This document shows positions 23,244-55,970 of a DNA stretch of 64,000 nt, piece by piece; within the stretch, counting starts at the first letter, position 1, and each line of letters begins with the position of its first letter. Source of the DNA: Paramoeba atlantica (lineage: Eukaryota; Protista; Discosea). The stretch is taken from the NCBI GenBank assembly GCA_977017575.1, contig CDRNVI010000164.1, positions 1-64,000 of the forward strand, given 5' to 3'. A program made the translations under genes and the position numbers. Under the pieces are notes generated by a model. It ran no database searches. It was not told where the DNA came from and was given only the letters and a program-made list of their open reading frames with translations.

Positions 23244-26200
23244 TCATTCAAAATCTTCAAAATCTTCAAAATCATCAAAATCATCAAAATCATCATTCTC
23301 TGTTGTTGTATCATCATCATCATCATCATCATCATCACTCTTTGATGAGGAGATCTCATCGTCATCAACCAGAAGGAGGAGAGAAGATGAAGAAAGAGGA
23401 GAGTGGTTAGGATTTCTTTGGGTGGTCTTGTTCTTTTGTAAACAATGATGAGGGAATAAGTTGGTGTTGGTTTGTTGTTGTTGTTGTTGTGATTTTTTAA
23501 AGTGAAAATTTTGTTGTGGTTCATGTGGTTCAACATAAATAAAAGAAGGAGGAGGAGAATCCTTCTCCTCCTCCTCCTTTTTTTTTAAAGGATTTTGTTT
23601 CTTCTTTCTCTTTGGTTGTGATGAAGATGAAGATGGTGGTTGCTGATTGGCAATCCTCATTGAGGAGAGGTGGTGAGTTGGTAGTGGTGGTAGTAGGAGT
23701 GAGGAGGATTGTTGCTCGGAAGAATAAGAAGAAGAAGAAGAAGAAGGAATGATGTTTTGTTGTGAAGTACAAAGAGGAGGTCGAGGAGGTCGAGGAGGTC
23801 GAGGAGGTTGAGGAGGTTGAGGAGGTCGAGGAGGATATTGGAGCTGGTGTTGTCGTTGTGGCAATAATTGTCTGACTCTTTTTGTTCTTAATTTTGTTGT
23901 TGTTTTCTTCTTCTTCTGTAGTTTCTCCCTTTCAAACTCTTTTCTCTTTGTCTGGGGCAAACAAAACCAAATTGCTTTTTCGAATAATACGTTCCACCCC
24001 TCCCAATGTTCTTCTTCTTCTTTTGCACTATTATCTTTATCCCAGCAGCTGCTTCGCAAAAGGTATTGCACAAAGTTTTTCCATGTAGGAAATTCATTGT
24101 CATCTCTTCGAAAAAAACTTTCCCCACTAATGAGAGCCCACAATAAATCATAATAGAGTTCCTCTTTTGTGAAAAAAGCTTTTGTTTGTCCTCCATTTGG
24201 TCTTCTTGCGCAATATTTAGAGAAGTTTTTTGAATGATGAAAGATGTTCAAATGATCAATAAAGTATTTTACAATCTTTTGAACTTGTGTCATTTCAAAA
24301 ATTCGAAGTTGGAGTGAGGGTGAAAGGTCAGCTGGCCCAATATCAACACTCAAGAGAAGTTCTTTTTGGAACAAAGAAGCAGAAGAATCAGAAGAACCAG
24401 GAGGAAAACAAGAAGAAGAAGAAGAAGAAGACTGAGGAGAAGAAGAATGCTGAAAAGAAGAACACTGAGAAGAAGGACTGAAACAATCAGAAGTCAGAGA
24501 ACAAGAAGAATCAAAAGAAGAATCAGAAGAATCAGAAGAATTAGAAGAATAATCAGCAGAAGAACAAGAAGAAGAATGAGAAGAAAAAGAAGAATGAGAA
24601 GAAGAAGAAGAAGAACGAGAAGAAGAAGAAGAACAAGAACAAGAAGAAGAACGAGAAGAAGAAAAAGAATGAGAAGAAGAAGAAGAACGAGAAGAATCAG
24701 AAGAACAAGGATATCCTTGTGAAGAACCAAGTCGTTGAGAAGAACCAAGTCGTTGAGAAGAACAAGAAGAAGAACCAAGTTGAGAAGAACCAAGTTGTTG
24801 AGAATTACTTTTTGCAAAAGAACCTTCTTTTTCTTCTTCTAAATGCTCAACATCCAATTGTTGTTGTTGGAGATGTAACACAAAATGGGATATCAAATGT
24901 GCATCAGAAAAAAGAAGAAAAAATTCTTTCTTTTTTTGAAAAAAAGATAAGAAACGAGAAAATTGTTGAGGAAGACAAGAAGAAGTTGATGAAGAAGTCA
25001 AAAAAGACTTTTCAATCAAAGAGAGAAGAGCATCATGATGTTCTTGAGAAGGTGGTCTTTGACAAAGACCAAAAGAAGAGGTCTCTTCACAAAAAACACA
25101 AGAATACACTGTGTGATGAGAAGGAGGAGGATCCTTCTTGGAGAGGTCACCATTATCACTACACCCATCACCACACCCATCACCACACCCATCATCACCA
25201 CCATCACCTTTTTTTTTCATCTGTTGGAGCTGTTGTGATGAAAAAAAAGGTTCAAAAAACTCCTTCTTAAATCCAACAAATTCCTCCTCTCCACCAATCC
25301 AAAGTGGAAGAGAGCTACTTCCAAATCCTTTCCCACTTCTTTTCATACGAGTCAGTTGGCCTCCCAAAAATTTGTGACAGTATCCAAAACTGTTAATCAA
25401 ATCTCGGTAAAGAGCTTGTTGATCCGTGGACAAAGGTTTTGTATCTCGCCCAAAAAAAAGTCCTCCAAAATTAAATTCTTGTGTTGGGGCCCAATGAGAA
25501 AGAAAGAGAAGATCTTGCAAATGCTGAATATAAATCTTTTGCGGGATACAAAAGATTTGATCATGATTACGAATAAAGTCAATCATCTGAAGAGAAGAAG
25601 AAGAAGAAGGAGAAGGTGGTCGAAGAGAAAGTGCCTCAAAAAGACTTTGTAGTTTTAATAATTGATTTCTTTTAATAAAAGACAAACTTTCATTAAAACT
25701 CACACCAAAAATTCGAATTTCAATCCGTACCCCACCTAGACAACCATCACCATCACCACCTCCGCCCTCCCCTCCTCTCCTCCTACCATTAACAATCTTT
25801 TCAAATTTAAAGAGTAATTTCTGAAAAGATTTTTCCCGTTGGCGCAGTGCTCCAACTGTCTTTGGCATTTCACTCCACCGAATTTTCGAGAAATTGGTCA
25901 AAAAATGGAGAATTGGTGAATAAATCTTCACCATTGCCCATTTCTCACCCAACAAAAGAAATGGTTTCGTTCGAGACCCAAAGGTCAAAGTTCCAATTGG
26001 ACACTCCTCTTTGAGAATTTCTTTGAAAAAAAGAAATCCTTCAGTTGTACCACTGCTAACATCACCTTTTTCTCCTCCTTCACCTTCTCTCCCTTCTCCT
26101 CCCCCAACAAGAGGAGGAGCTTCTTCTTCTTCTTCTTGTTCCTCTTCATCATACTTATTGTCATTATCCTTCTTCTCACTTCTTCTTCTCTTCCTCACTA

Positions 26201-28575
26201 TCCTCTTCTTTGAGTCAGAGAAGAAAGAAGAAGTTTGGAATGAAGAAAAAATCCCAAAGGATCCAAAAAACCGAAATAATGGAAAAAAGTTTACAATTGG
26301 AATTGGGGGGGGAGGAGGAACAACCACTGTCGCACCAAGGTTTGGGTTTGCTGTTGAAAAAGAGGAGGAGGAAGAAGAAGAAGAAGAAAGAGAGAGAGAA
26401 GATGAGGAAGACAAGCCAGAGGAGGAGGAGGAAGTTTTTTGGGGGAAAAAAGAAGAAGAGATAAGTTTTGGAGAAAAGAGAATAATCTCTTTCATTGGAA
26501 TTGTTGTTGAAAAGTCAAAACAACAACAATGTCTCAATTCTTGAGATGATGATGAAAAAGAGATATTTTCTCTATCTTGTAAGGAACCAGGAGGTGGTGG
26601 GGGAGGGGAATTCGAGAAGGAGGAGGAGAAGGGAGAAGAATGAGAAGAATGAGAAGAAGAGTTTGAACAATGTGACTGCTGCTGCTGCTGTTGAGGCAAA
26701 CGAGAAGAACAAGAATAAGAAGAACAAGAAAAAAAAGAACGACTTAAGGCAGAGGAGGAGGAGGAGGGAGACTGTTGCTGCTGCTGCTGCTGATGTTGCT
26801 GAGCATTTGGATCCAAAGTATTCGAACGAGAAGAAATTTGTTGTTGTTGTTGTGGTCCAACAAAAATCTTTGAAGGAGAGGATGATACACTCTGATCAGA
26901 GAGAAGTGTGGTATCACAAAAAGAAAATTTTCTTAAAAAAAAAAATAAGTCAGCGAATTGTTGTGTTTTTTCACAGTGGTCTGACCACTCCTGATCAACA
27001 ATAGGAGGATCATCAGCATCATCATCACTCCAAAAAGTATGTTTTCCACCGTAACTTCCCACTCGAATATGAGAGACATCACATAACTGTAAGGCTTTCA
27101 CAATCAATGAAATCGAAAAATTTTGTGTTTTCCGGATCACACACTTTCGAGGAGAAGATTTTGGAGGAGGAGAAGATTTTTTCGAGGAAAAAGAAGAAGA
27201 GGAGACATCTTCACCATCTCCTTCTTCATCAAATCCAGGTTGAAGGTCGACTGAAAGGACTCCGTAAATATTCAAAAAGTGAACAAAAGCTGTCCGTTTT
27301 GGAAAAGATTGTTCAGTATCAGGAAACCAAAGAAAAACTGGTTGAATAGAGAGGATATTCACGAAGGGATAACGAAATAAAAGAGGATCTTCAGGGAGAG
27401 AACACGAAAAAGAATCAGGTATCAAAAGAGTTGATGGCCCTCCAACAAATAAAGGAAGCTCAGAGACAGGCAGCCAAAAGGTGTAAAAATCTAAATCTAC
27501 CAATCCATCCGCCCATATTGGCAGTTGAGGTAAATCCAGAATGGATTTACCATCACATTCACCATCACCATCACCATCACCATCACCATCACCATCACCA
27601 TCACCATCACCATCACCATCACCATTACCACCAAAAGACTGCTTTGAAGAAGGAAAGTATTCTTCTTCTTCTTTACTTTCTTCTTCTTCTTCCCCTTCCT
27701 CTTTTACTTCTTCAATTGTCCCTTCTTCTTCTTCTTTTTCTCCAAAAAAAGAAGTTACACAGTGGTAGTGGTGTGACTCTTCTTCCTCTTCTTCAGACAA
27801 AGACCGAATAGAATGATCATCACCATCACCATCACCATCACCATCGCCATCATCCATCTTTTTTGGTTCAAAAAAAATTACATCATCATTGTCACTAAAA
27901 ATTTTAAAAAAAACAATAAATTAGAAAAAAAACAAAATGAAAAAAAGAAAAGAAAAGAAAAAAACAATACTTAATAATAAAAAAAAATAAAGAAAAACAA
28001 CACTTAATAAAAAAAATAGATATTTTAGTGTGAACCTGAAAGAAGAAAAAGAGAGTTGTGGAGACGAAACATTAAGTATATGATCTCTTTCTTCTGTTTT
28101 CTCCTCGTTATAACTACTCATCATGAAGAGTAGTGATTCTTCTGTAAAGAAAAAATAAGAAAAAATTTTCTTCATTGTGTTTTTGTTCATTGAACCTTCC
28201 TCCCAACCCAAAACCCAAAGGAGAGAGAGAGAAGAGAGAGAGAGAGAGAGGGAGGTTGAAAGAAAGAAAATAAAATGAAACAGAGATGAGATACCTTTTG
28301 TTTTGAGGGATGATGGCAGTGCTGATGAAAAGGGTGGGATAAGAGATAACCTCCTCTTTTCCTCTTCTTTTGTGTCCTCTCCTCTCATCCTGAAAGATGG
28401 AAGTGGTGATGGTGATAAAACATTCTTCTTTTTCTTAAATGATGATGATTTACAAGAAGAAAAAAACTTCTTTTTATCTCCTCTAGAAAAATTAAGAAAA
28501 AAAAGGTATCATGTTGTTAGAACAAAAATATCTTAACATCATTTTTTTTTGTGACTTTAATTACTTTTTCTATAT

Positions 28576-28608
<33 letters not shown>

Positions 28609-31886: not shown

Positions 31887-31933
31887 ATGATGAAACAAGC
31901 GAAGATTGATTTTCAATCGAACCATCAACAACC

Positions 31934-31964
<31 letters not shown>

Positions 31965-34900
31965 CCACAACAATCGCAACTCCAACTACAACCACAACAA
32001 CAACAACAATCGCAACTACAGAATCCACAACAGGGGGATTCTGTTTCCCTCTCTCAACAAGATGCAGCAACACCAACAATCCGAACAATGACAGAAATAA
32101 TTCAAGAACAAAATATTGAAAAAAAAGTCGAATACCTCAAAACATTTTGGACAATTCCATCAAGAGGATCTGCAACACAAAACAAAGAAACCCTTCCAAC
32201 ACATCTCCAAGAACTTGAAAATGAATCCATGATTGAGATATTAGCAAGTCAATATTATGATGATCCGGTAATTATGGTTGATTATGGTTGTTGATTGTTA
32301 TGGTTGTTGTGTGGTTGTATGTAATTGTGGTTGTTGTGGTTGTAGTTGTGGTTGTTGTTTGTTGTTTGGTTGTTGTTGTTTTTTGTTTGGGGAAGGGAAA
32401 AAAAGAGCACCAGAGGTTTGTTTGTTTGTTTTTTTGGCGAGGAAATCTTCTTTTCAGCAAAAAAAAATTCGCGAATTTTTTTGTTTTTTGTTTTGTTTTT
32501 TGTTTGTTTTTTGTTTTTTGTTTTTTGTTTTTTCTGTCAGCAGTTTGAGAAAAGAAAGAAGAAAATTTCTTCAGAAAGAATGAAATGAAGAGAATATTAT
32601 TATAACTCTTTCAGTATTTTTTTTATTTATCTTTTTTTTCTTTTCAAAAACAAACACTTAGGAAGTGAATTCACGATGCATAAGCTCTGAAAAGGAACAA
32701 AATGCATTGAGACAATCACTTTCTCAAAGCGGATGGAATTTGGGTTTGCTTGGTCTTTTTTGTTTTGCTAAAAAAACGAATTGTGATGGAAACAAAGAAA
32801 TTCGAGTGACAAATGAAAATCTTGTAATGTTTTCTGCAATTGATGGGCGACACCGTTGTCTCGTTTTGAAGGTATTTTTCTTTTTTTTTTCAATGTTCTT
32901 TCAAGAGTGCAAGAAAGGGGAGTGTTTCTTGTTGGGGGGGGGGTGTTGTTGTGATTTGGTTTTTTTTGTGTTGTGGGTTTTGGGTTTTGGGTTTGTGTTT
33001 ATGGATATATTTTTATAGGAGTGGAATTCCATACTTTCAACAACATGCTTTTTTTTTGTTTTGTTTTGTGTGTTGTGTTGTAGAAGGATAAAATAATACA
33101 ACACCAATAATGCACAACAACAACCTTTAAAAACCCCATTAATTACCCTATCCCCACCTGGTTATTGACCCCCCTTTTTTTTCTCTAAATTCTCTGATTT
33201 ATAGAATTTGAGTTTTACTCATAATGATGTTTTGGGTTCAGAAACAACACCCTTCTTTCCTCTTTCTGCTTCCTCCTCCTTATCATTTCTTACTTCTTCT
33301 TCTCTTTCTTCTTTTTCTTTTTCTCCTTCTTCTTCTTCTTCTTCTTCTTCTTCTTCTTCTTCTTCTTCTTCTTCTTCTTCTTCTTCTTCTTCTTCTTCTT
33401 CTTCTTCTTCTTCTTCATTGTACAAGAAGTTTCGAACCATTTGCCGAGGGAGATGGTGGTCTTTTACGAACTTTAATTCTGAACCACAACAAAAACTATT
33501 TTTTCTTTTTGAAGGGATTGCTTCAACAAACCGAAATGTTTTTGTTCAATGGACATTATTGGATTTTGTTCGTGCAATTCGAAAAATTCGACAAAATTTT
33601 GAAAGGGCTGATTTTGAAGAAGAAGAAGAAGAAAAGGGAGGAGGAGATAGCAGAGGAGATGATAGCAATAAGGCTGGTGAGTTGAAAGACAGTGAGGAGA
33701 AGGCTGAGGAGAAGACTGAGGAGGAGAAGAAGACTGAGGAGGAGGAGGAGGAAGGAGGGAAGAGGAGAAAAACAAAGAAAAAAAAAAAGAAAAAAAAGAA
33801 AAAAAAGAAAATGACAGAAAATTTTTTAAAAAAACTTTTGCAGTTAGAACACACCTCATCAAAACAAACACTTCTTCGGATGGCTAATACAATTTTAAAT
33901 TCTGCCGGAATGGAGTCTCAAATGATTTGATATTTAGTTCAGAGTGATTTGATTGTTGAAGAGAAAGGAGAAGGAGAAGGAGAAAGAGGAGAAGGAAAAG
34001 GAAGACGAGATTCAAAGGTTTTTTATTTTTTATTAATTTTAAAATATTTAAAGAATATCCTTATTTTTTTAATTTAAACCCCTCCCATAAAAAAGCCAAC
34101 AACCCTCTTTTTTTCTTTTTTCTTTTTCTTTTCTTTCTTTATTGCAAATATTAATTTGAAGAAAAAACTCTTCTCTTCTCTCTCTTCTCTCTCTTCTCTT
34201 TTCTTCTTTCTTCTCTTATTTCTCTCTTTTCTCTTCCCTCTTTCTCTCATTTCTCTTTTTTCTCTCTTCTCTTCTCTTTTCTTCTCCCGGCAGGGTTCTC
34301 TTCTCCCGGGTTCTCTTCTCCCTGGTTCTCCTATCTATCTCTTCTTTCCTTTTCTTTTTTTTTTTAGAAAGTAGATTTTGTTTTAAATGTACTTGAATTT
34401 TGGAGAGTTCTTCATTCGAGCACATATAAAGATATTTTTTATCGTGGCTTTTTTATGTGTGGACCTGTACAACAACAACAACACACCACCACCACCACCA
34501 CCACCACCACCACCACCACAATGTCTCCTTTTGTGGGTGTTGGTTCTCCTATCTCGTCTTCAGAGCATCCATCGTTATCATTGCCATCGCTATCATCCTC
34601 CTGTTTCTTTGCTCAAAACGATCAAAAGAGAACTGAATTTCTTCAATTTTGTGCTTCCAATCTAAAGCGTGTGAGTTCAAAATCAAGTATTGGTTTATTT
34701 CATCAGAAATTTAAAGAAATTTTTATCCCAGAAGATGCTCAAAATTTCATTTTAACTGGCCCTCTTCCGATGAACATCATTAATCGAAACTGTCGAAAAG
34801 GTTTATCTTTCATTTTTTTTCTTCTTTTTTTTTCTCTCTAATTAGAAAAGAACCACACAAAACATACAACACACAACACAACACAACACAACACAACACA

Positions 34901-35405
34901 ACACAACACAACACAACACAACACAACACAACACAACACAACTACAAAAAAAAAACCTGTGGCTGCTCTGTTGTGCTTTATTCATTTTTTAAGAAATAAT
35001 TTTATTAATTATTTTAAATAATTTTAATAGATACGAAACAACAACAACAACCTGCCAAAACTACTAATAGTATCATTGAGGGAGATGGTGGTGACAATGA
35101 GATTATTGTTATTTCTGATGATGAAGTTTTTTCATTGTCACCAGTAATAATAAGTTGTTTGAAGAGTGGTGATGATAAGGAAGAAGAAGAGAAGGAAAGG
35201 GAAAGAGAAAGTGTTTCGGATGATAGTAAAGAAGAAAAGAGAGATGATAAAGAAGAAAAAGAAACTGCTGAGGAAAAGAAAAAAGAAAGAGAGAAGAAAA
35301 AGGGAGAAAGAGAACAACATACTACTGCCACCACAACATCATTATTATCGTTTCTATACCAAAAAATAATCCACTTTTACCTTTTCAATATTTTATCACT
35401 ACAAG

Positions 35406-35464
<59 letters not shown>

Positions 35465-40999: not shown

Positions 41000-41595
41000 A
41001 GCTTTCATTGAATATTCACTTTGGGTTAAAATTCATTGCAGGGTAGGGGTAGTATTCTGTTGCCTGCCATTGACTTTTCCAGAAACAAAAAGTCTGAAAA
41101 GGTGAAGAAAGACTTTCTGCAACGCGGAGTTTTTTCGAGTTGATGAAAGAAATGAAAGACAAACAAATATTTTTTTTCACAGCCCTGATTTAATTAGCCC
41201 CCATTCTTGCCAGTTCTGTGACATCGTTTTCGGGGAATGAGAAAACAGGAATGGGGTGCATTTGTTTTCACTAGCTTGAAGAGATGGATCATATCCCTTT
41301 CAAAGCTCTTTAAAAAAAAAGCTTCTGTGCTAATCTTTTGGAGCTCTTTTTCAAACCCAAAATTCGAAACACTTTTTCGACAACGGCGACGAAAAAATCG
41401 AACAAAAAATCTGGGGGGTTTCATTTGAGAAGAATTGGAGAGGAGTTTACGCGCGGAAAAGGAACGATTTTTGGCTCGGGGTTGTTCTTTTCTCTGGAAA
41501 CCACAGGCCTGAACATTTCTAGGAGAGGTTGGAAGCGCTTTAGATCCACGGGGTGGACTGAAGTTGTGGAAAACTTATCCTAAAAAGTAAGGAGG
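41000..41595 (+). pseudogene. Stop-interrupted upstream part of the dioxygenase gene
   Basis: Same frame as ORF 41596..42666 after a probable 44-nt intron (41139-41182). Stops at 41009 TGA, 41027 TAA, 41191 TAA, 41272 TAG, 41311 TAA and 41581 TAA. Confidence 0.5.
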
Positions 41596-42666
41596 ATGGA
41601 AAGAGAAAAAAAAAACCCTTCCCCCCCCCCAAACAAACGAAGAAAGCTTTTGGAAGAACTCCCTAATGAAAAGCTCCTCTGCCCAAAACCTGGCAACACA
41701 AGAGGCCAAGGACTGAGCGACGAACCGCAACGTGACCTTCCGGCAACCTCAAAGGAATCGATCTCACCAAATGTCTCTGACAACACGAACCCCCCCCCCA
41801 AGAACGAAGAGAAAAAAAAGAACAAGAAATCGAGGTTTTGCATGGATAGAATTCCATTGACCTTAACCAAGAACCAGATGCTTACCTGTGGGTCAGGAAA
41901 AAGGATAGATAAAAACACTTTTTTGAATGTAAACTGCGAGGGAAAGTCTTGCAGGGCACACTTTTTCAAGAAGTTCTTTTCGGAGGACGAAATGCTTCGT
42001 TTGAAAGATCGACTTCTTCAGTGCCCAAAACAATACTGGGAAAGAAAAACAGATAAGAGGGGGACAAGAAGATTTCTTTATTCTGGCCACTGGAAGCATC
42101 GGTTTTACAACCTAGCCTTTGGGGCTGGAAAGGCTGGAAAATTGGAGCTCGAAAACCCGTTTTTGAAAAACATTTTGGTCGAGTTGGGGAAGAAGGTCTC
42201 TCGTGAAGCTTTGTCTCTGAAGAGGCCTGACGTTTATCTTCCCATTCAAGAAGCTGGCTTCGAAGAACAAGACTTTGGGATGTTCCATTTGTTTATGTGT
42301 CCTGCCGGTCGATCTTTTATGCATACAGACGATAACGATTTTGTTTCTTGTATCTTCTCCATCAGTCTTGGATCTGGAGATGGGGACGGGCTTCATATGG
42401 GGGGATGCGGAGTGGACTTCAATTTGCGAGTGGGAGATCTTGTGATTGCAGACACCGATATTTTTTTTCACGGTTCTCCAAGCTACCAAGGAAATGAACA
42501 CCCCAAAATTATTTCGGAAAATGACAGACTGGTGGGTCTCTTTATTCTCCATCGAAAGTTTATGATCATGAAGGGGGTTCCAGCTGATGATTTGGAGAGA
42601 GAACCCTATGAATTTCGAACCATTCCAAACCAAAACCAGAAAAAGAAGAAGGAAGTTGATATTTAA
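41596..42666 (+). CDS. TET/JBP-like 2-oxoglutarate/Fe(II) dioxygenase
   Basis: HxD motif in FMHTDDND, core SCIFSISLG...GDGLHM...VDFNLRVGDLVIAD, distal HGS and C-terminal RLVGLFILH resembling TET RxSxVFYxH. N-terminal basic PPPNKRRK. Intact 356-codon ORF. Confidence 0.72.
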   Translation: MEREKKNPSPPPNKRRKLLEELPNEKLLCPKPGNTRGQGLSDEPQRDLPATSKESISPNVSDNTNPPPKNEEKKKNKKSRFCMDRIPLTLTKNQMLTCGSGKRIDKNTFLNVNCEGKSCRAHFFKKFFSEDEMLRLKDRLLQCPKQYWERKTDKRGTRRFLYSGHWKHRFYNLAFGAGKAGKLELENPFLKNILVELGKKVSREALSLKRPDVYLPIQEAGFEEQDFGMFHLFMCPAGRSFMHTDDNDFVSCIFSISLGSGDGDGLHMGGCGVDFNLRVGDLVIADTDIFFHGSPSYQGNEHPKIISENDRLVGLFILHRKFMIMKGVPADDLEREPYEFRTIPNQNQKKKKEVDI

Positions 42667-42869
42667 TAATTAAATTGTTTATTTTTTTTGTCGTTAGCAC
42701 TCAGTTGAGTCCTCTCTACGAAAATTTTTTCCCCCTTTCTCCACTCTTTTTTCTGAAAAACCAGTTTGATCTTTTGTAAATATTATTCTTTTGCCAAAGG
42801 GTGTTCAGAATAAAAGGAGGAGGAGGGGAGAGGAGGGTGTAGACACAATAATAAAAATAGATTGCTCAC

Positions 42870-44141
42870 AAAGGAAATTTGAGAAAACTTTTTGATTTAT
42901 CAACCTTTTGTTCCGCCCAACTTGGTTCTTTTTTTAGGAAGTGGTTTCTTGGTTTGTTTTTTTCTTTTGTTGCTCTGAGGGAAAGGCAAAAGTTCATTAT
43001 CATAACAACAACAGGGTTCCATTTCATCTGAAGGATTCTCCCAAAAACTATGAGCATACAGGTAATAAAAAAGATGACGTCGAAAACCTTCACAATCGTC
43101 CAAGGTAAAATCCAATCCAAAGTTTTTGATCAGACAAAATCCGACAAAACAAACCATGACTCCACACTCTGTCATGTTCTTGGGGGGGGGGGGTGAGGTG
43201 AGGTGGTGATCAAAGGGGGTTGTGTCAGAAAATATTAAAAACCAAAAAGATTAAACAACAAAAAAAAGGCAAGTTTTTTAACCTGACCCTGCTGTGGGGT
43301 TGTTGGTGAGCTATGAATAAATTCTGGGGGTTGTTCTTCTGGGGGTATTTCCTCTTAAAATCATTTAACAACAATACCTAAAAGATGAGAAGGGTAAAAA
43401 AAAAAAAAACTTAAGCTGAAAAGAAAGAAACAAAAAAATGAAAGAGAAAAGAACTGAAAGGTTCTTCGAATAAAAGGAATTTTTGTGGTAGAGACTGTCA
43501 TAACAATCAAGAACGACCCTTCTTTTCTGTTCACAAATATACCCTACAAGAAGGATCCAATGATTCTGGCTTACAAGACAAGGCAGGTAAAACGTTTTAT
43601 AATCCCAGATAACCACTTTCTATAAATTCAAAACAATTATTGGCAAGAAGATAGATATGGGGGAAAATTGAAAAACAAAAGAAAATAAAAAAAACTTACT
43701 TCCAAATAAGTTTGAGTTTGTTTTTGATACTGTTGTGTGTCATCTAACATAAAAGTGGGAAGTTCAACCAGTTCATCCTTCAGAGCATTTCCCTTTAGGA
43801 GAACTTGAAAGTAGAGACTGACTATCTGATAAAAAAAAGAAAAAGATAATCAGCAAAAGAGGGGGAGGGCTTGAGTGAAAAGGAAATTCAATAAAAGAAA
43901 TATTTTCCTTTTGAACCTGTTCACTCAGTGGACTTGTTAAAATACTCTTAAAATCACTCGGGGAAATGGGGTATCCACCGCTGAGGGTGGATACCCCAAA
44001 ATAGAACTGTGTCTGCATTCCATAAGATTCCAAGTTTCTTTTTGGAATTTCAAGTTGTTTTTCAGTTGGAATAAATCTTTTCCAACGCTGTAGCTCGTGA
44101 TCTTTAAAAATTAAAGTTTCAACTAATTGCTTGATACGCAT
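42870..44141 (-). CDS. Ulp1/SENP-like (peptidase C48) domain exons
   Basis: YLPCLVSQNHWILLV (His, about 43560), CYDSL (Asp, about 43495), TPQQGQ spliced to NMTECGVMVC (Gln, Cys about 43165), then FTLDDCEGFRRHL. Confidence 0.75.
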
Positions 44142-44164
44142 TAACTCCTTCCTTCCTTTCTTTT

Positions 44165-45620
44165 CTAATGTAGTATTATGTGGATCAGCCTTGAAACAAA
44201 GAAGAAAATAAAGTCAATTTTAAGAGAAAAACAAAAGTATGATGAACCAAACCAAACCCCCATTTCTTGAAAAACATCCTCTTTTGATGCCTTTAATCGA
44301 GATATCATCCCTTCATTATGAGTATGGCAAGAGGCACTCGGATATATTGAAATCTTGGAAGGGTATCCTTTTCCTTCCTTTTGATTCTCCCATTTTGCTG
44401 TCTCTGCATGTGTACTGGGTATAAAAGAGGGAGAGAATGAGGAGGAGGAGGAGGAGGAGGAGGATGAGAGAGAAGGAGAAAGAGAGAGAGAAGATGAATG
44501 AGAAGAAAAAGAAGAATGAGAAGAACGAAAATTTGAAGGAGAATGAGAAATAGAAGGAAAAGAAGGAAAAGAAGGAGAAGGGGACAATGAGGGAGCTGAA
44601 GGAAACAGAGAAGGAGGAGAAGAAAATGGAGAAGAAGAGAAAGAAGGAGAACAAAGAGAACTGAGAGGGGAAGAAAAAGAAAGAGAAGGGGAGAATGAGG
44701 GAGAAGGAGAAGGAGAAAATGGAGAAGGAGAAGAAGAAAATGGCGAAGAAGAAGAAGAAAATGGCAAAGAAGGAGAAGGAGAAAATGGAGAAGACAGAGA
44801 AGAAGGAGGAGAAGAAGAGAAAGAAGGAGACTGAAGAGAAAAAGAAAGAGAAGACAACTGATGAAAAGAAGGCAATAGGGGAGATGAGGAAAACAGAGAA
44901 GGAGAAGAAGAAGAAGGAAAACTTGCAAAAGGAGAAAGAACTGGCGAGTGTGAAAAACAGGGACTTGGAGAGAAAGAAGGAGGATGAGAATGAACTGGGA
45001 AAGGAATAAAAGAAGATGGAAAATTACTCATTTTTGGGGTTGATGATGGGGGAAAAAGAGTTGTGGAAGATTGGGAAAGAGAAAAGGGAGGGGAAGAAAT
45101 GTGGATTGGAGGGGATGTGGTTTGGAAAGAAGGAGATGGAGAAGGAAAAGAAGAATGTGAACTTCCTGAGAGATGAGTGGAAGGAGAGAAATTACTTTGG
45201 GATGGGAGTGGAAAGGAAGAATGGGAAAAAGGAAATTGAGAGTTTTTTCCTGGTGATTGAGAAAGAGAAGAAGGGGAAGGGGAAGGGGAAGGGGAAGGGG
45301 AAGGGGAAGGGGAAGGGGAAGGGGAAGGGGAAGGGGAAGGGGAAGGGGAAGGGGAAGGGGAAGGGGAAGGGGAAGGGGAAGGGGAAGGGGAAGAGAGGTT
45401 AATTGGAGTGGTTTGGGAAGACATGTAGTGTGATGAAGGGTTGAGAGAGCGGGTGTTGTGACGATGAGAAGAGGATTGATAATTTGTTATTGGATCCAAA
45501 GTATCCTGAAGGGGCTGGCTACACAAAGAAGCATACTGATAAGCTGATTTGCAGGCAACAGAATTAGGTAGTTTTGTTCTTTTGAGGAGGGGGGGTTGCT
45601 TTGAAGAACCAGAGGGAACA
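44165..45620 (-). CDS. Ser/Pro-rich linker exon between the transposase and Ulp1 domains
   Basis: Open frame from a probable acceptor near 45635 through ORF 44165..45526. Includes a (GGGGAA)n tract at 45273-45391. Confidence 0.5.
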
Positions 45621-45759
45621 AGTTTTGAGGAGTGACCCTGATTTTGGTAGAAGGAAAGAATTATTAGAAATCTGCTTTTGAGTTTTCATATTTTATTTTT
45701 AAAAAAAACAATTTGAAATTTTCAGAAAACAACAAATTTGGGGGAAAAAAGGGTCAACA

Positions 45760-48700
45760 AAAAATACCTCACGAATAAGTCGAGAAGGTTCATTTGCACT
45801 TATTTTGCTTGCTCTGTTTTCAAGTTTTTTCTCTGATCTCAATGCCTCACTTCGCTCCATCATCCCTTTGATCAAGGCATTCATTTGGATTGAAAAAGTT
45901 CCTTTCTCTTGACTGCTCACTCCTTGCCTACGTCTACCTCCAAATGGCTTTTGGGCCCAACAATGAGAACGAGCTGCAAGAATGGCTCCTTCAATTGCAA
46001 ATCCTGCTCTTCGTGGAAGAGGGTATCTGTGTTGTGTATGTCAGAGGGGAGTGACTTTATTCTGTGTTACAGAAAAACTGAAAATCAAAAAAGAAGAATG
46101 GATATTATGAACCATCATTTTTAAAATTTTTCAACACCACAAAAATAATAAAGAAAAAACAAACCTCAATAACTCCCAATGAAGGTGATCATGGAGGGTA
46201 TGTAAATAAGGAGCCCAATAAAGAGGGGAGAAATTACATTCGTTATATTTTCTTCCCCAAAGAAGGGAAGCCTTTCGGACAATATTGATCTCCTGGTGAG
46301 AGAGTTGATATGGGGCTGAAGCCATTTGGAGAATGTCATAAGTCAACGTTAGAAACTCATATTCTGGTTCAAATGTGTTTCGTTCTGAATCTCCAATTAA
46401 AACATCGATGATCGATAAATCAAAATCTGAATAACAAAAATCATGAAAAAACTTTTGAAATTTTTTTTTCTTAATAAAATTATTTGATCAAAAAAAGAGA
46501 GTTTTTGTTTGTTTGGAAAAAACAAGAAATAGTAAATCAACCTTTTGCATTCAACAAAGCTGCATTAAACGTCGAAAAAGGAAGGACTTCTGGTTCCTCT
46601 TGTTCATGTGAAATGCTTTTGACTTTTTCACTTTAGAGATTTGAATCCATCCATTCAGCTAATTTAATAAGATATTCATCATAAAGAAAATCAACAGCTC
46701 CTTTTCGGGCTAAAATAAATGATTTTTTTTGAAAACAAAAATATATTGTCAGTTGCAGAAAAATAAAGAGAGAGAATGTAATAATTAAGATATTCAAAAA
46801 AAAAAAAAAAGTATTTCAAAAAATATTATTCTTTTTTTATTATTCATAAAATTTTAAAAATAAAGAAGATATCAAAGAAAGAAGAGAAGAATAAACCAAC
46901 CAGTTTTATTGGGGAAACCCCTTAAAATCTTGATCCATTGAACGTAACTGGGTCTTACTTTTTTGATTCTCTCCCAAAGGTTGAATACCTTTTGTGATGG
47001 ATCTGGAATTTTCACTCCTCCAATGAGATAAAAAGCAATTCGAATCGTTAAATCATGAGGTGAATCTATTTTCTTTTTCAATGAGAATCTTATTCTTTTC
47101 AAAAGTATTATTTTCAAAATATTCTTTTTTTAACTTACACGGAGAAACATCCATCACAAAAAGTTTAACAACATTTCTACAAGTCCCTTCAACAAAGTGG
47201 ATCAAGTCCAAGTTGTGGTCCCATGGTTGCGATGGAGTGATTGGAGGATTTCTCATTCCCATTTGATTCATAAATTTTGCAAGACTGTTCTTGGATCCCT
47301 CCCAGCCCTGAACCAATTGAAAATCGCTTTTTTTTTGTTCTAAAGTCCACCATGTATGTTTTTGATCCAAGTTACCAACAAGATTAATTGCCAGTTCATC
47401 ATCAGCCTCAGCAAAACTTTCAAAGATACTATAACCACCAAATTGATTATCCCAAAAGTGATGCTGACAAAAAAATATGGGCGGGGGGGTGGATGTTAGT
47501 AAAAACAAAATTATTTTTTTTAGTTGAAATTATTTTTTTTTTCTTAATTATTTTTGAAATTTTTCTTCTTTTATTTTCTTATTCATTTTTATGGAGTAAA
47601 TTATTTTAATAATTTTTTGGAAGAAGCTGCAAACCTTTGTATGATCATCCCAAAGCCCTCCATCATCCTTATCTCGAACAATGTTACAACGCCAACAAGG
47701 CCTTTTTGATGTGTGATGAAACATTGATTTGCCACCATGACCAAAAAGAAGTGAAGAGCATAACATGTCATGTGTTTCAGTGAATGAAATTGTTCGTTCC
47801 TTGAAATCTGAACACTGAATCTTTTTCTAATAAAAATCACAAAAGAGCGCCAAGAGAAGAAAGAGAGAGGAGAGAGGGGAAAGAAAAAGTAGGTAAAAAA
47901 GAGAGGAAAATTAATGAAATTAATATCAAACGAAAAATTAAATTAATTTTTTTTAAAAAAAAAATTAAAAAAGTCAAAAATTAAATTAAATTAATATTAA
48001 TATTAATATTAATATTAAATTAAAAGCATTACAAAAAAATACTTACCTGGTAAATCATCTGATAAATCGGAGATATCTCTTCTTGAAAGGTTTTAAAGCT
48101 CTCTTTCATTACAAAGACACCCAAACTTAAATTGAGGACTGCTCTCCAAGTTCGAGTTCCTTTTGCCCACCACTCTTCATCACCACGTATCAATTTCACA
48201 ACAACTCCTTTGTTCCTTCGATCAAAAGAACCCCCATCAGCAGAAAAGATCATCTTCAGCTTTAAATTTTCCTCTGCATTAGCAACACCACCAATAGTCG
48301 CTTCTTCTTGGTGATTCATGTTGTTGTTCACCCGATCATATTCATCCCAAAGAGGATACTTGTTGCCCTCCCAATCATCATCAAACATTCTATTCACTTC
48401 ACCCTCAACATCATTCACTCTCCAACCATGGTCTGTTTTTTCCAAGGGAATCTGATCTTTTAGTTTTTGGAACCAATACTTGAACTGACAATCTGAAAAT
48501 TCCCAACCCAGTTCAGAATTAAGACCTCGAATCTAATACCTAGTAAGACCCAATCTTAGAAACAATCTTCCAAAAAACTCTGCCTTTTCCTGTTTTTTCA
48601 TACACCGATATTTTTTTGATACTTCTTGCGCATCATTTGGGAGTCCAAAAAAGTTTCTAATCTGTTGTTTCTGAGAAAAACCACTCCTCCCCCTCCTTGC

Positions 48701-49207
48701 ATTTCCATCATCCAACTGAAAGAGTTTCTCTAAGACTTCAACAATCTGAGAAGTGTTGCAATCACTTAAAAGCTGAGCCAAGAAAGAGGTTGGATTTTCA
48801 AAACCAAGTGATCCCACAGCTTCATTCACCCAGTTGGTTCGGAGGAATTTCTCATCTGAGGAACTATGGTGATGGCAAGGAGCAGTCACAGGAGGAGTAA
48901 AAGTGGCGGTGGTGGTGGTGGTGGTAAAGGTACTGTTGGAAGCAGCAATGGGGAGTGTGGTGGTGGTGGTGGTGGTGGAAAAAGAAGAGGTGGTACCACC
49001 TCTTCTTCTAGTCTAAAAAACAGAAATTATTTTTCTTGCAGTGTCATCACTTAACTTGACTTGAAGAATAAAAAGACTCTTCTCTTTGCAAAAAAAAAAG
49101 ACCTGTTCCTGTTGTCCTTGTTGTGGAAAAACTTGAGGAATCGCTCCCATACCCATCATACTCTCAGCAGTTTGATCAACAGCAGCAGCAGCTCTTTCTA
49201 ATTCCAA
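45760..49207 (-). mobile_element. EnSpm/CACTA (CMC)-like DDE transposase, multi-exon, with four in-frame stops
   Basis: MIFSADGGSF (D, about 48237), THDML...GHGG...CWRC (about 47690-47775), WDHNLDLIHFVEG (about 47200), YLHTLHDHL (about 46180) and GFAIEG (E, about 45990). Stops at 49013 TAG, 48533 TAG, 46633 TAA and 46041 TGA. Confidence 0.7.
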
Positions 49208-49269
49208 ACACCAAATTCTTTCAGAATAGCAACACTTTCAAACCCACCAAAAAGAAAAAAGACAAACAG

Positions 49270-52200
49270 AAACTTTAAACCCACCCAACTACACACACAC
49301 ACACAGGTGAGAGAGAGAGAACTCTGGAGAAAGAGAAAAGAAAAAAGATTAGTGTTAAAAAAGGAAGGAAGGGGAGGAGGGAAAGGGGAGGGATAAAATG
49401 AATGTGGTAATCTTTATAATACATGCACACATCATTGATATTTGACAAACAACCTCTCAATAATCGATAAGGGTTTAGGGTGTCCATTCACCTTGCAATC
49501 CAACACACACACAAACACTTTCGTGCACAACACTCTCAACACTCTCCAAGAGTGTGCTTTGGGAGAGCAAAACGCAGCCAGGACCAAAAAATGGAGCCCA
49601 CACCAGCAAGTTAGAGAAAGGCACTGGTTTGTCAAAGTAAAATCATGCACAGTTAATCCCAACTACTTCCAAGGAGGAAACTCACGGGGGTTCCAGAGTT
49701 CCATCGAAAAATCCCAACTTCAAACCCAAAGAGAGACAACCAAAAAAAAAAAAACAGCGAAAAGGGTGTCCCCCCCTTGGTGTGTCCCTTCTGAGAAAAA
49801 CAGAAACTGACTGGAGAAAGAAAGGGGTTTCATTGAATGGAGGGGGAAATATGAGGGGAAAAACACAAAGAAAAAGAATCAAAGAAAACATATATGACCA
49901 AAAACAAACACTAAAACCCCCGATGAGATTCACAACAACAACAACATGATGGTGGAAGTGGGGTGATAGAGCACAGAGCAGGGGGGGCATCCTCCGACAA
50001 ACTCAACAATCAGACATTAACAAAAACAAACTCTCGGTTTAAGTTCTCCTTTTATATTAAGAATTCTATGAATTTCCAACAAACATCTTAACAACAAAGG
50101 AACAATACAACAGCAATTTGTGATGAAACACAAATAAAGACCATCCAAAACGCTCCCTAAACCCTTTTGGGAAAACCCGAAGGAAACACAAAACAACACA
50201 TCAAATCAGGAAGCATCTTTGTGAGTCGCAACACACACACACACTTTGATATTTTTAACAAACAATAACAATCTCTCGATATATTGATAAAGGGTTTTAG
50301 GCTGTCCATTCACCTTACGATTGGTGGGGGGAGGGGATATGGCAGGAAGGAACTAAAAGGGAAAGAGAAAAGGAAAAGATTAGTGTTCAAAGGAATGAAG
50401 GAGGGATAGAAGAAAAAAAAGAGGAAGAGAATAAAAGAAAACAAACATAACAGTTATGCAACGATGGTGGTGGAGATCAATGGCAATCTTTGTGACATAT
50501 TTGATAAACAATCTCTCGATATATTGATAATATTGGTGTCCATTCACTTTGCAATCCAACACACAAACCCTTACCTCAATTAAAACACCTCACAAACCTG
50601 ATGAGAACTGAAAGAGAAAAGAGAAAAGAGAAAAAAGAAAAGAGAAAGGAAGGATTTCGTTCAGTTCAATGTAAGGGGGAAAAGGGAAGAAATACAAAGC
50701 AAAACAAAAACAAAACAAAAACAAAAATAAAACCAATGAATTTTACAACAATATATTATTATAGAAGTTGGTGTGGATCAATTAAAACAAAAAAAAACAG
50801 AGAACTGCCAGTTCAAAAAACAAAAAAAGAGAGAGAGAAAACCAGATGATTGTTTGGGGCTTTTGAAAAATTATTGTCGAATATTTTAGGAACAACACAC
50901 GTCGTGAAACAGCAGCACACTTCCGGAACACAAGAAGTCAAGAAATTATCCAACAATAACAATGACATCTCTCTTTTTTTTAAAAAAAAAAAACATAATC
51001 AGGAAAAAAGAGAGAAAAGAGAGGGAAAAGAGAGGGAAAAGAGAGGGAAAAGAGGAAAGAAAAAGAAAACCAGAAAAGGAGAGTGAACACACAACAAAGC
51101 CTTTGAAGAAGAGAAACATGATTCTTTTTTTTAACAAATATATTTACTTGCTGATTACAAAACTCATCTCCCTTCGAAAAAAAAAATCAGTTTGGAACAA
51201 CAATTAAAAGAAAAGAAAAAGAAAAAGAAAGAGAAAAAAGAAGAAAAGAAAGAAAAGAAAAGAAAACCAAAAAAAACATTGTAAAAACTGTTCAAACTAA
51301 GGAAACAAAATTTTAGAATCTTATTTGGTGAGAAGAAAGAGAACAAAAAGGACACATCAAGAGGAGGGGGTAGGAGAAAACAAAAAGAAAACAGAAACAA
51401 AAAAGAAATGATCTATCAATCGTCAAACGAATGGAGAGAAAAGACAGTCAAACCAAAAAAAATCAAAACAACCACCTTTTATCACGAAAAGGAGGGGGGA
51501 AACACAAAGAAGGAGGAGAATAAAAGAAAACAAAAAAAAAAGAAAACAAACACTAAACACCATGATTCGCAATAATAATAATTGGTAACGGCGAAATATT
51601 ATCACTTCAAACCTTATCAATTAAAACCCCAACAAACACCCACAAGCAAGAGAGAGAGAGAACTCTGGAGAAAGAGAAAAGAGAAAAGATTAGTGTTAAA
51701 AGGAATGAGGGGGAGAGAGGGAGGAAAAAGAGGAAGAGAATAAAAGAAAACAAACCCTTCATATAACAATGCAACAATGATGGTGGAGATCAATGGTTTC
51801 TTTGTGACACACACACTACTGATATATTGACAAACAATCTCTCTTAATATTGAGGCAATTCAACACACAAACACTTTTGCACGCAACAACAACACTCCCC
51901 AAGAGCTCTTTGCAACGCAACAGCAAAGTGTATTGCTTGATCATCACCCAAAACCCTTTCAATCAAGACCCACATCTTGAATGTGGGAATAGCAGCAGCA
52001 GGAATAAGTGGTTTTAAAATCCTTATCAATTAAAACACCTCACAAACCCTGATGAGAACTGAAAGAGAAAAGAGAAAAGAGAAAAGAGAAAAGAGAAAAG
52101 AGAAAAGAGAAAGGATTTCGTTCAGTTCGACGGAAGAAATACAAAACAAAACAAAAACAAAACAAAAACAAAAATAAAACCAATGAATTTTATAATAATA

Positions 52201-53129: not shown

Positions 53130-55970
53130 AAACATGCTGTTGCTTGTTCGGGGGGGATGAAGGGAGTCGCGGTCAGGGGGGCAAAGGGAAAAGACTTTTT
53201 TTTGCTTCTTTCAAACAACTCTTTTTTTGTTTTCTTTGTGTGTGTAAAAAAAAGAGAAAAAGAGTTGATCTTGATGAGGTGAGAGATCGCTTCAAAGACT
53301 ACACGCGGAGAGAGAGGAAGGAAGAATTGTGGTGTGGATTGCTCAGAACATTATCCCTCCCCTATGTGATCAGGTTTTTCTTTGTTTCCTCTCAGTGTTT
53401 TTTTTTTTTTTTGGTCCTTTCTCTCCTCTTTTCCCCCCCCTTTTTTTTTGGTTTTTGATCTCTTTTCCTTTTGTTTGTGTGTCTTTTGTTTGTGTGTCTT
53501 TTGTTTGTGTGTCTTTTGTTCGCCACCCTAAACCCTTGTTTGTCACACTTGTTTTCGTCATGTTTATTTTTCCTTCCTTGGGTATCATGATGGATGAGGT
53601 TTGAGATGTGGTTCTCTTCATCCTTTTGTTTGTCTTGTCTTTTTTATTTGTTCTTCTTTCTTTGTTCTTTTGTTCGTTCTTTTTTTTATCTTTTTGTGTC
53701 CTCTTTGCTCTTCCTTTCCCCCCTTTTCCCCCTTCCCTTTCACTCTCCCTTCCCTAAGCCCTTTTCTGTTGTGAACCCCTACCTTGTTCTGTTGTCTTCT
53801 ATTCATTTTGAAGTCTTTCTCACTGCTCTTTCCTGTCGAATCTCCCCCTGGTTGATTCTCCCCTCTTCTGTTTTTCTACTGTCTCCTTTCTTACCTTTTC
53901 CTCAAAAATTTGTGTTTTCTTCTCACTTTGATTGTTCTTTCTTATTTGGAGTGTTTTCCTCTTTTGTGTTTTTCCCTCTCTTTTGTCTTTCGTTGGTGCT
54001 TTGTGCTCCTTCAACAACAACAACCCTGCCTGCTGTGTTTTGATTCATTTTTGTTTTTTGCCACATTTGATTTTTTTCTGTTTTCTCTCTTTGAATATTT
54101 TCTCTTTTGTTCAAAACCCTATTCTTTCTTTTGTTGTTGTTGTTCCTTTTATTTGATATAAACCACACCTTCTGCTTTTTCGATTTGATCTTTGGATTGA
54201 CTTTCGTTTATTGTTTTGTTGTTTTTCTGTGGAGATCTCATCAATCCTGACATTTTCCCTTTCCCCTCCCCCCCCCCAAATCTTCGCTTCCCCCTCTTTT
54301 CCTTTTCTCTTTTGTTGATATCTCCCCATCTTTACTCTAATAACCTTATTCTCTTTCTTCTCTCTTTCTAAACCTTTTTTTCTTTCAATAGAGTGTAGTT
54401 GTGGGGCAGAGGAAGTTTTTCTCCCTAAATTTGTCGTCATTGCAATCTTTTTCTCTTTCTTTTTTTTCAATCTCTTTTTTGCAAGTACTTTTTTCTTTTT
54501 TTTTTCATTTTCTCTTTCTCTTTCTCTCTTTTAAAGAAATAAAATAGAATGATCAATTATTGCTTGTTCGGGGGAGGGTGATGGAGGGAGTCAAAGTTAG
54601 GGGGGCGGCAAGGGGAAGAGACTTTTTTTTGCTTCTTTCATCAAACAATTCTTTTTTTGTTTTCTTTGTGTGTGTAAAAAAAAGAGAAAAAGAGTTGATC
54701 TTGATGAGGTGAGAGATTGCTTCAAAAACCACACGCGGAGAGAGAGGAAGGAAGAATTGTGGTGTGGATTGCTCAGAACATTATTCCTCCCCTATGTGAT
54801 CAGGTTTTTCTTCTTTGTTTCCTCTCAGTGTTTTTTTTTTTTGTTTTGGTCCTTTCTCTCCTCTTCTCCCCCCTTTCCTTTTTTTTTTGGGTTTTTGATT
54901 TCTTTTCCTTTTGTTTGTGTGTCTTTTGTTCGCTACCCTAAACCCTTGTTCGTCACACTTGTTTTCGTCATGTTTATTTTTCCTTTCTTGGGTATCATGA
55001 TGGATGAGGCTTGAGATGCGGTTCTCTTCATCCTTTTGTTTGTCTTGTCTTTTTTATTTGTTCTTCTTTTTTTGTTCTTTTGTTCGTTCTTTTCTTTATT
55101 GTCTTTTTGTGTCCTCTTTGCTCTTCCTTTTCCCCCTTTTCCCCCTTCCCTTTCACTCTCCCTTCCCTAAACCCTTTTCTGTTGTGAACCCCTACCTTGT
55201 TCTGTTGTCTTCTATTCATTTTGAAGTCTTTCTCACTGCTCTTTCCTGTCGAATCTCCCCCGTCGATTCTCCCCTCTTCTGTTTTTCTACTGTCTCCTTT
55301 CTTACCTTTTCCTCAAAAATTTATTTTCTCACTTTGATTGTTCTTTCTTATTTGGAGTGTTTTCCTCTTTTGTGTTTTTCCCTCTCTTTTGTCTTTCGTT
55401 GGTGCTTTGTGCTCCTTCAACCCTGCCTGCTGTGTTTTGATTCATTCTTTTGTTTTTTGCCACATTTGATTTTTTTCTGTGTTTTCTCTCTTTGAATATT
55501 TTCTCTTTTGTTCAAAACCCTATTCTTTCTTTTATTGTTGTTGTTGTTCCTTTTATTTGATATAAACCACACCTTCTGCTTTTTTTCAATTTGATCTTTG
55601 GATTGACTTTCATTTATTGTTTTGTTGTTTATTTTCTGTGGGGATCTCATCAATCCTCTGACATTTTCCCTTTCCCCCCCTCCCCTCCCCCCCCCCAAAT
55701 CTTCACTTCTCCCCTCTTTTCCTTTTCTCTTTCGTTGATATCTCCCCATCTTTACTCTAATAACCTTATTCTCTCTCTTCTCTCTTTTTAAATCTTTTTT
55801 TCTTTCAATAGAGTGTAGTTGTGGGGCAGAGGAAGTTTTTCTCCCCAAATTTGTCGTCGTTGCAATCTTTTTCTCTCTCTTTTTTTTCAATCTCTTTTGT
55901 AAGTACTTTTTTCTTTTTTTTTCATTTTCTTTTCTCTTTCTCTCTTTTAAAGAAATAAAATAGAATGACC
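53130..55970. repeat. Tandem duplication of a ~1.43-kb unit
   Basis: 53130-54550 matches 54560-55970. Both carry the exon-like KRVDLDEVRD(R/C)FK(D/N)(Y/H)TRRERKEELWCGLLRTL. Confidence 0.92.

Follow-up and report, generated by a model that had tools for sequence, protein, structure and literature searches.

We analysed a stretch of 64,000 nucleotides from Paramoeba atlantica (GenBank assembly GCA_977017575.1, contig CDRNVI010000164.1, positions 1 to 64,000 of the forward strand), hereafter the window, and within it a candidate DNA transposon that carries a dioxygenase gene of the TET/JBP family. The window is AT-rich eukaryotic DNA (GC 25-42%), packed with simple repeats, tandem arrays and decayed mobile elements. 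An earlier note on this DNA had joined the dioxygenase gene, a transposase-like gene with an Ulp1 domain and a ParB/methyltransferase-like gene into one giant element of about 30 kb (23-53 kb), the ends of which it could not locate. Aligning copies from different loci now defines the termini: the mobile unit in the window is 41017-49293 (8,277 bp, right-truncated), corresponding to ~9.4 kb when complete. Its main parts are as follows.

41017..49293, minus strand (that of the transposase gene): right-truncated DNA transposon copy with a terminal inverted repeat (TIR); boundaries shared with loci L002, L003, L005 and L013
41017..41034, plus strand: left TIR, CACTTTGGGTTAAAATTC; from the comparison of six ends and from L013
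41596..42666, plus strand: gene for a TET/JBP-family 2-oxoglutarate (2OG)/Fe(II) dioxygenase, a single intact open reading frame (ORF) of 356 codons; from the atlas, AlphaFold (AF2) and Foldseek
43002..43619, minus strand: Ulp1/C48-like cysteine protease exons; from Pfam, PDB and profile matches
44168..45685, minus strand: Ser/Pro-rich low-complexity open stretch of 506 codons between the transposase and Ulp1 parts; from the frame listing
45702..49012, minus strand: transposase exons (DDE core); from alignment with P0021-P0027 and tblastn
49293..49320, no strand: truncation point, with a (CA)n/(GA)n microsatellite adjoining the last element letters, ...CCCAACTAC; no window counterpart of L005:8221-9548

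Ends, copies and insertion site of the element

The bounds come from a comparison of independent insertions in a second, independent assembly (ENA ERZ24900291), the source of loci L001-L013, in which the window locus is L004 (98.6% identical) and numerous further copies occur. Six ends at six loci all open with CACTTTG(G/A)(G/A)(T/A)(C/T)AAAA, the common start being CACTTTGGG, and their flanks are unrelated. On the left side, L002 has 41014-41138 and 41449-43124 in common with the window, whereas its upstream flank differs (a G protein-coupled receptor gene and unrelated DNA). On the transposase side, identity between the window and L003, L005 and L013 reaches 49287-49292, and in L003, L005, L008 and L010 similarity opens at CACTTTGGG with a different flank in each. 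The two termini match one another in inverted orientation across ~14 nt (CACTTTGGGT(C/T)AAAA). A complete copy is present at L013:964-10372 (9,409 bp, 5'-CACTTTGAGAC...AACCCAAAGTG-3', with terminal letters ...TTTTAACCCAAAGTG), so that the termini of the complete element read 5'-CACTTTGGG...CCCAAAGTG-3' and include the CA(C)...(G)TG inverted repeats typical of the CACTA/Mirage/Chapaev/Transib (CMCT) clade. L002 has lost a stretch of 310 bp just within the left end (41139-41448) that the window, L004, L005 and L013 all retain.

The L013 copy interrupts the integrase gene of a long terminal repeat (LTR) retrotransposon exactly between two codons (between ...YPAQNGAV and ERYVREV...), and the integrase frame is restored once the L013 flanks are joined. 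An uninterrupted integrase relative in L008 (L008:4545-4650) aligns codon for codon over the same site, with no base gained or lost. Therefore, this copy, the sole one with both flanks (n=1), produced no target-site duplication (0 bp). Such a precise insertion without a duplication is unusual for a DDE transposon. The flank of another copy (L005:8190-8220) resembles the 3' half of a tRNA gene or a tRNA-derived short interspersed element (GGATTTGAACC...), and judging from this resemblance that copy may have landed in a tRNA-related repeat.

Missing from the window copy is the final 1.33 kb, which in L005 and L013 contains the zinc-finger exon (visible in the ORF L005:9290-9598) and the right TIR; because of this loss the window copy cannot be autonomous. 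Because the right end is absent, a search of the window for inverted repeats enclosing either 23-53 kb or 40.5-50.5 kb yielded low-complexity pairs only. No direct repeats enclose 23-53 kb either.

Copy number was assessed from protein clusters at 90% identity in the other assembly. The window-type TET cluster consists of four proteins, including a transcript fragment from MMETSP, the L005-type TET cluster of nine proteins on nine contigs, and the transposase-exon cluster of nine proteins on ~9 contigs. Altogether the family occupies ~10 contigs, with copies 95-99% identical, and at least five contigs carry both genes: those of 241442, 25667, 27138, 13968 and 13462 bp are found in a TET list as well as in the transposase list. 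The window, L004, L005 and L013 agree in gene order and orientation, and in several independent copies the TET gene lies between the element ends and accompanies the transposase. The expectation that the same gene set would recur at other loci was thus borne out for the TET-transposase pair at several of them, but not for the ParB-like gene.

One could imagine instead a subtelomeric segmental duplication in which a TET/transposase block was passively copied and the short inverted repeat is incidental. In the other assembly the locus is indeed close to a contig end (at 9-45 kb, on a contig of 241 kb), the region is rich in repeats and tandem arrays, and the only complete copy lacks a target-site duplication. 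However, passive copying would hardly make six ends with unrelated flanks stop at an identical nucleotide, split an integrase ORF exactly between two codons, leave two ends mutually inverted over ~14 nt and spread copies 95-99% identical over ~10 contigs. We regard this explanation as very improbable compared with a cut-and-paste transposon.

Not all copies of the transposon are well preserved. At 213 of the 242 positions where the decayed copy in L003 differs from L005, the change in the direction of L003 is G>A or C>T, affecting 55% of CpG sites and 18-23% of the other contexts. This one-directional change is the mark of a process resembling repeat-induced point mutation (RIP), in a context unlike the CpA of Neurospora. 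A pogo/Tc5-type DDE_1 transposase ORF (L003:10985-11590) is nested within the same decayed copy.

The transposase, the Ulp1-like protease and the TET/JBP dioxygenase

The transposase gene is interrupted by three introns and by one stop codon peculiar to this assembly, and its conserved blocks were located by alignment with homologues.

48533..48535, minus strand: stop codon in transposase exon 1, peculiar to this assembly; from P0008, L004, L005 and the runs
48221-48244, minus strand: first D, SADGGSFD; homologue alignment
47827..48046, minus strand: intron of 220 nt, GT..AG; joint in run X5, absent from DNA runs X1 and X6
47758-47778, minus strand: second D, ETHDMLC; homologue alignment
47686-47697, minus strand: CWRC; homologue alignment
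47455-47466, minus strand: HH; homologue alignment
47185-47220, minus strand: H(5)H(2)E within DHNLDLIHFVEG; homologue alignment
46427..46541, minus strand: intron of 115 nt, GT..AG; joint in run X5 only
46027..46164, minus strand: intron of 138 nt, GT..AG; joint in run X5 only

Run X5 is a data set of the same organism, presumed to be RNA, whereas X1 and X6 are DNA runs. The joint across 47827-48046 restores a reading frame colinear with the intronless homologues. The stop codon at 48533-48535 reads Y-stop-I in the window and YQI (Gln) in P0008, L004 and L005, and position 48535 is G in X5, X1 and X6 alike. We conclude that the transposase gene is spliced and transcribed. The "similar nonsense damage" previously attributed to all genes of the region was mostly a misreading: since three of the breaks are GT-AG introns seen in RNA, most of the apparent damage is introns, the one stop codon tested is Gln elsewhere, and the TET ORF is intact.

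An exhaustive HMMER search with transposase exon 1 gave 11 matches, none of them annotated. The conserved blocks are S.DGG..D.RN, (N/H)DM(K/L), C..C, HH and PIT...H.....H..E, and the D, D, C(2)C and E motifs are common to the intronless homologues P0023, P0024 and P0027. Pfam returned no match, Transposase_21 (PF02992) included, on the transposase exons and homologues; a profile search for named relatives gave three matches, all unnamed; and HMMER detected no sequence similarity to RAG1/Transib, the profile matching only C2H2 fingers among PDB sequences, where the N-terminal C2H2-type finger was recognised weakly (E=0.017).

Structure comparison was more informative. In a model of the homologue P0023 (mean pLDDT 52, 65-86 in the RNase H-like core), nearly all of the top ~40 Foldseek matches in the PDB are RAG1 or HzTransib (E 2e-3 to 0.1), and VIA-align places 32 RAG1/Transib/BbRAGL entries at Z 6.3-7.6, with the next fold at 3.5; as an example, 128 residues overlay at 3.5 Å onto RAG1 506-708. 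A fold search of AFDB clusters with the transposase model retrieved uncharacterised proteins and one protein annotated as a Mutator-like element (MULE), at TM ~0.2, and was uninformative. The model supports a transposase that is CMC-like in the wide sense, that is, a member of the CACTA-Mirage-Chapaev-Transib clade. In this sense the earlier assignment to a CMC-like transposase is supported. The D, D, C(2)C and E-like positions are conserved, the His motif departs from that of the clade, and the anticipated Transposase_21 or other Pfam match is lacking. Two other assignments were considered and rejected: KDZ, as no KDZ transposase or CxC Pfam family matched any exon or homologue and the fold points to RAG1/Transib, and Helitron, because of the inverted repeats and the DDE core.

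Downstream of the transposase core, on the same strand, the Ser/Pro-rich stretch (which includes a simple repeat of 124 nt at 45270-45393) leads to exons with the residues expected of an Ulp1-type protease.

43557-43565, minus strand: Ulp1 His in NHW; motif
43494-43502, minus strand: Ulp1 Asp in YDS; motif
43161-43172, minus strand: Ulp1 Cys in TECG; motif

NHW, YDS and (K/Q)N.TECG occur in catalytic order and are kept in the L005 pieces at 37-42% identity, although these pieces alone gave no Pfam match. The best PDB matches of the His-Asp piece are the CE-clan enzymes ChlaDub2 and RickCE (E ~0.5-0.8), and a two-sequence profile of the Cys piece finds SENP5/SENP1 at their catalytic Cys (E=0.012-0.02). 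Judged by these sequence features an Ulp1 domain, as previously proposed, is probable: the order of the motifs and the weak C48 and SENP5/SENP1 matches speak for it, but the Pfam cut-off for C48 is not reached.

The TET/JBP gene, in contrast to the spliced transposase gene, is a single intronless ORF, the N-terminal 80-90 residues of which are low-complexity or disordered.

42319..42339, plus strand: MHTDDND, HxD iron-binding motif (H243, D245); alignment A2
42466..42483, plus strand: FHGSPS, distal iron-binding His (H292); alignment A2

In alignment A2 (11 homologues) H243 and H292 are invariant, D245 is nearly so, and several Arg residues are invariant too; in a marginal profile match among PDB sequences, the distal-His stretch aligns with the distal-His strand of gamma-butyrobetaine dioxygenase. 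By sequence, the ORF has only seven relatives among 5.8 billion proteins. Pfam (Tet_JBP, PF12851) gave no match on the window protein, phmmer of the ORF against PDB sequences gave none, and two metagenome scans for relatives with flanks were likewise without a match. In a language-model atlas, on the other hand, Tet_JBP accounts for 71 of the 100 nearest clusters (score 0.95, 198 of 256 features in common). The AF2 model on the 11-sequence alignment has a pLDDT of 71.7 overall, above 85 in the core and 75-97 across residues 110-340. With this model the eleven top Foldseek matches in the PDB are all chains of CcTet (E 1e-8 to 1e-7), followed by CMD1, TET2, NgTET1 and AlkBH3, interleaved; among Swiss-Prot models JBP2/JBP1 are best (E 2e-11 to 4e-8), and the top 17 are all JBP2/JBP1 except for two AlkBH3 entries at ranks 8-9.

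The presence of AlkBH3 in these lists raises the question of whether the enzyme could be another 2OG-Fe(II) oxygenase, such as an AlkB-like repair enzyme or a protein hydroxylase, carried for a different purpose. AlkBH3 and AlkB score well in the fold searches (E 1e-6 to 1e-8), Pfam Tet_JBP is not reached, and sequence identity to any solved TET is 10-12%. All the same we consider this unlikely, given that CcTet fills the eleven best PDB places ahead of CMD1, TET2 and NgTET1, that JBP2/JBP1 dominate the 17 best Swiss-Prot models, that Tet_JBP dominates the atlas neighbourhood, and that TET-bearing transposons have a precedent (PMC12730594). With CcTet and JBP as the closest folds and a conserved active site, the call of a TET/JBP-like gene made by the earlier note holds for the fold and the active site, below the Pfam threshold, and the HxD...H residues are kept in an intact ORF.

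The gene is intact and transcribed: residues 229-356 of the protein are 100% identical to the MMETSP transcript fragment P0031. Between the window and L002 the ORF differs by 7 synonymous and 4 non-synonymous changes. In L001 (5314-9599 and 10001-11116) a third and more distant TET paralogue (P0007, 44% identical) adjoins piggyBac-type (DDE_Tnp_1_7) transposase genes, a setting which hints that TET genes may also associate with another transposon superfamily here.

L005 and L013 are ~95-96% identical to the window across 49287-45127 (the transposase half) and 41337-41017 (the left end). Between 45127 and 41337, however, the Ulp1 and TET parts are 39-50% identical in protein (39% for the TET proteins; the Ulp1 pieces are given as 37-42%), and the breakpoint at ~45127 falls in the Ser/Pro low-complexity linker. 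This abrupt change in identity indicates that an exchange of the TET-Ulp1 module sets the two subfamilies apart. The genome also contains a distant paralogue of the transposase (P0024, L006), in the vicinity of which there is no TET gene.

A TET-bearing transposon and its relatives

We suggest, at a probability of roughly 80%, that 41017-49293 of the window is a 5'-truncated and non-autonomous member of a multi-copy cut-and-paste transposon family, the complete form of which (~9.4 kb) has two convergent genes. The first, when spliced, would encode an N-terminal C2H2-type zinc finger followed by a CACTA/Mirage/Chapaev/Transib (RAG1-like) DDE transposase and, farther along that strand, a putative Ulp1-type cysteine protease preceded by a Ser/Pro-rich stretch. 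The second, which is intronless, would encode the TET/JBP 2-oxoglutarate/Fe(II) dioxygenase. In such an element the zinc finger of the transposase may bind the CACTTTGGG ends, and the RAG1-like DDE enzyme would move the element by cut-and-paste. By analogy with the fungal TET-bearing transposons, the TET enzyme could oxidise 5-methylcytosine (or thymine) on the element DNA, and this oxidation could erase or alter repeat-silencing methylation or blunt deamination. The Ulp1 protease may be an accessory deSUMOylase, as it is in other Ulp1-bearing transposons.

Several points weigh against this reading. None of the three proteins (TET, transposase, Ulp1) reaches a Pfam cut-off in searches with 40-odd exon pieces and homologues: Tet_JBP gives E=0.044 in one of 11 homologues only, and Peptidase_C48 remains sub-threshold on the Ulp1 exons (E=0.0064, with 16.8 bits where 20.7 are required). 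The fold of the transposase is taken from a poor model of P0023, a protein 28% identical to window exon 1, and Z values under 8 can reflect a common arrangement. The clade's H(3-4)H is not seen as such, the His motif being HH plus H(5)H(2)E. L013, the sole complete copy, is without a target-site duplication, whereas CACTA elements generate 3 bp, Transib 5 bp, and 2-5 bp are expected in the CMCT clade. The status of X5 as RNA is a presumption; its coverage ends near 45.75 kb, and a single transposase-Ulp1 protein is putative. Finally, the activity and the substrate of the TET enzyme are predictions.

To our knowledge, transposon-borne TET/JBP genes have been described in three fungal groups only, and Iyer et al. 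in 2014 reportedly treated TET-bearing transposons of fungi. Such enzymes are thought to let mobile DNA undo host methylation-based silencing. The occurrence of TET genes on DNA transposons is established for Pucciniomycetes, Agaricomycetes and Pezizomycetes (PMC12730594), where the elements belong to EnSpm, Plavaka and ESTA (CMCT clade, CAC..GTG termini) and to KDZ (Kyakuja/Dileera/Zisupton), and they have been proposed to counter methylation and RIP-like mutation (Kojima 2025, PMC12730594). The family described here resembles them as a DDE element with an apparently functional (predicted) TET/JBP gene inside inverted repeats, with several families or subfamilies per genome, 5'-CAC...GTG-3' termini as in the CMCT clade, C-to-T hypermutation of repeats by the host, and a TET module that appears mobile between backbones. 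It differs from the fungal elements in its host, apparently a marine microbial eukaryote because the TET transcript occurs in MMETSP, a marine microbial eukaryote collection; in its transposase, which has no Pfam family and ~10 detectable relatives; in the Ulp1-like protease on the transposase strand; in the lack of a target-site duplication in the single complete copy, where 2-5 bp would be expected; and in its TET proteins, for which a handful of sequence relatives can be detected and whose identity to CcTet is 10-12%.

RAG1, Transib and ProtoRAG are the sole solved structures to match the predicted RNase H-like core (Z 6.3-7.6), and they share with the transposase the C(2)C after the second Asp and termini that start with CAC, as do the heptamers of recombination signal sequences and the Transib TIRs. 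Unlike them, the element shows no HMMER similarity, 5-bp duplication or RAG2-like partner, and its transposase has a C2H2 N-terminus and a low-confidence model. With the Ulp1-bearing CACTA/EnSpm elements and the Ulp1-bearing Mutator, Zisupton and Ginger elements it has in common the CACT termini and an Ulp1-type protease encoded with the transposase; compared with CACTA/EnSpm it lacks Transposase_21 (PF02992) and a 3-bp duplication in the complete copy, and contains a TET gene. The dioxygenase itself has the predicted double-stranded beta-helix and the HxD...H of CcTet (Coprinopsis cinerea), NgTET1 (Naegleria), CMD1 (Chlamydomonas) and JBP1/2 (kinetoplastids), but at 10-19% identity, and its substrate could be 5-methylcytosine, thymine or N6-methyladenine. 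CcTet itself probably derives from a Kyakuja transposon.

The family offers a compact bounded element, an intact and expressed TET gene, a transposase of predicted RAG1/Transib fold without a sequence family, two subfamilies with an exchanged TET-Ulp1 module, and a host in which C-to-T hypermutation of repeats is plain to see. It is therefore suited to testing whether an element gains protection against methylation or deamination from its TET cargo, and it contributes one more case to the known variety of RAG1-like transposases.

More tentatively, and as a possibility to which we give less than even odds, the family might represent a new RAG1/Transib-related lineage in a non-fungal marine protist, recently or currently active, inserting without duplication and furnished with an exchangeable anti-silencing cassette (TET/JBP plus Ulp1). 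Transcription, splicing and the presence of copies 98-99% identical at different sites form the basis for recent activity. If this were true, transposon-borne TET enzymes would extend beyond fungi, and the organism would provide a tractable system in which to test for self-demethylation, or protection from C-to-T hypermutation, by a transposon.

Neighbouring genes and genomic setting

Two neighbours to the left of the element lie within the 30-kb interval proposed before.

31887..37962, plus strand: ParB/methyltransferase-like gene, intron-containing and low-complexity-rich, not in the element; beyond the left TIR
23244..27857, minus strand: 1,537-codon ORF, homopolymer-rich, not in the element; beyond the left TIR

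As the left inverted repeat lies at 41017, both are outside the element; they are neighbours, not cargo. The six exon pieces of the ParB/methyltransferase-like gene have no Pfam match at E<=1 (ParBc PF02195 and N6_N4_Mtase PF01555 included) and no match among PDB sequences, the methyltransferase-like piece has no atlas match, and tblastn of the ParB-like and methyltransferase-like exons against 50,697 phage records found nothing; the exon pieces are short, and the spliced protein could still score. By eye the gene contains a DGRHR-like motif only, and at the "DPPY" position the sequence is GPLP. The identification of a ParB/methyltransferase gene thus found no backing in any of these searches, and the idea of a base-modification writer and an oxidiser on one element is unsupported because neither a methyltransferase nor a ParB domain was confirmed.

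A single ~30-kb transposon spanning 23-53 kb, with such a writer and the TET oxidiser as cargo, would fit the close packing of the genes and the lack of a recognisable housekeeping gene between them. Yet the inverted repeat at 41017 divides these genes, L002 and L013 carry entirely different DNA past that end, and no inverted or direct repeats bound the 23-53 kb interval. Moreover, the cluster of the ParB-like exon with DGRHR at 90% identity has one member on one contig, leaving it without such a relative in the other assembly, as compared with 4 to 9 for the TET and transposase exons, and a ParB or methyltransferase domain is undetectable. The supposed 30-kb "writer plus eraser" element in all likelihood does not exist, and the ~9.4-kb TET-bearing transposon takes its place.

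The 1,537-codon ORF has no Pfam or atlas match. It is open here, whereas its counterpart at L012:667-5279 in the other assembly is called as two ORFs of 984 and 521 aa, a split due either to variation between strains or to misassembly of a gene rich in homopolymers.

Elsewhere in the window, two direct repeats of 310 bp (3945-4254 and 10506-10815, 88% identical, 6.5 kb apart) mark an LTR retrotransposon, and duplicated blocks occur at 13.0-16.7 kb, 50.4-52.9 kb and 53.1-56.0 kb. A 72-bp tandem array at 29994-31111 (15.5 copies, 92% identity) is open on both strands, with 24-residue repeats (...SNSNVAASAPAPAPGATHRKRSLS...), and further tandem arrays, with a 93-bp unit and ~180 bp units, are located at 56380-57233 and 60792-62673.

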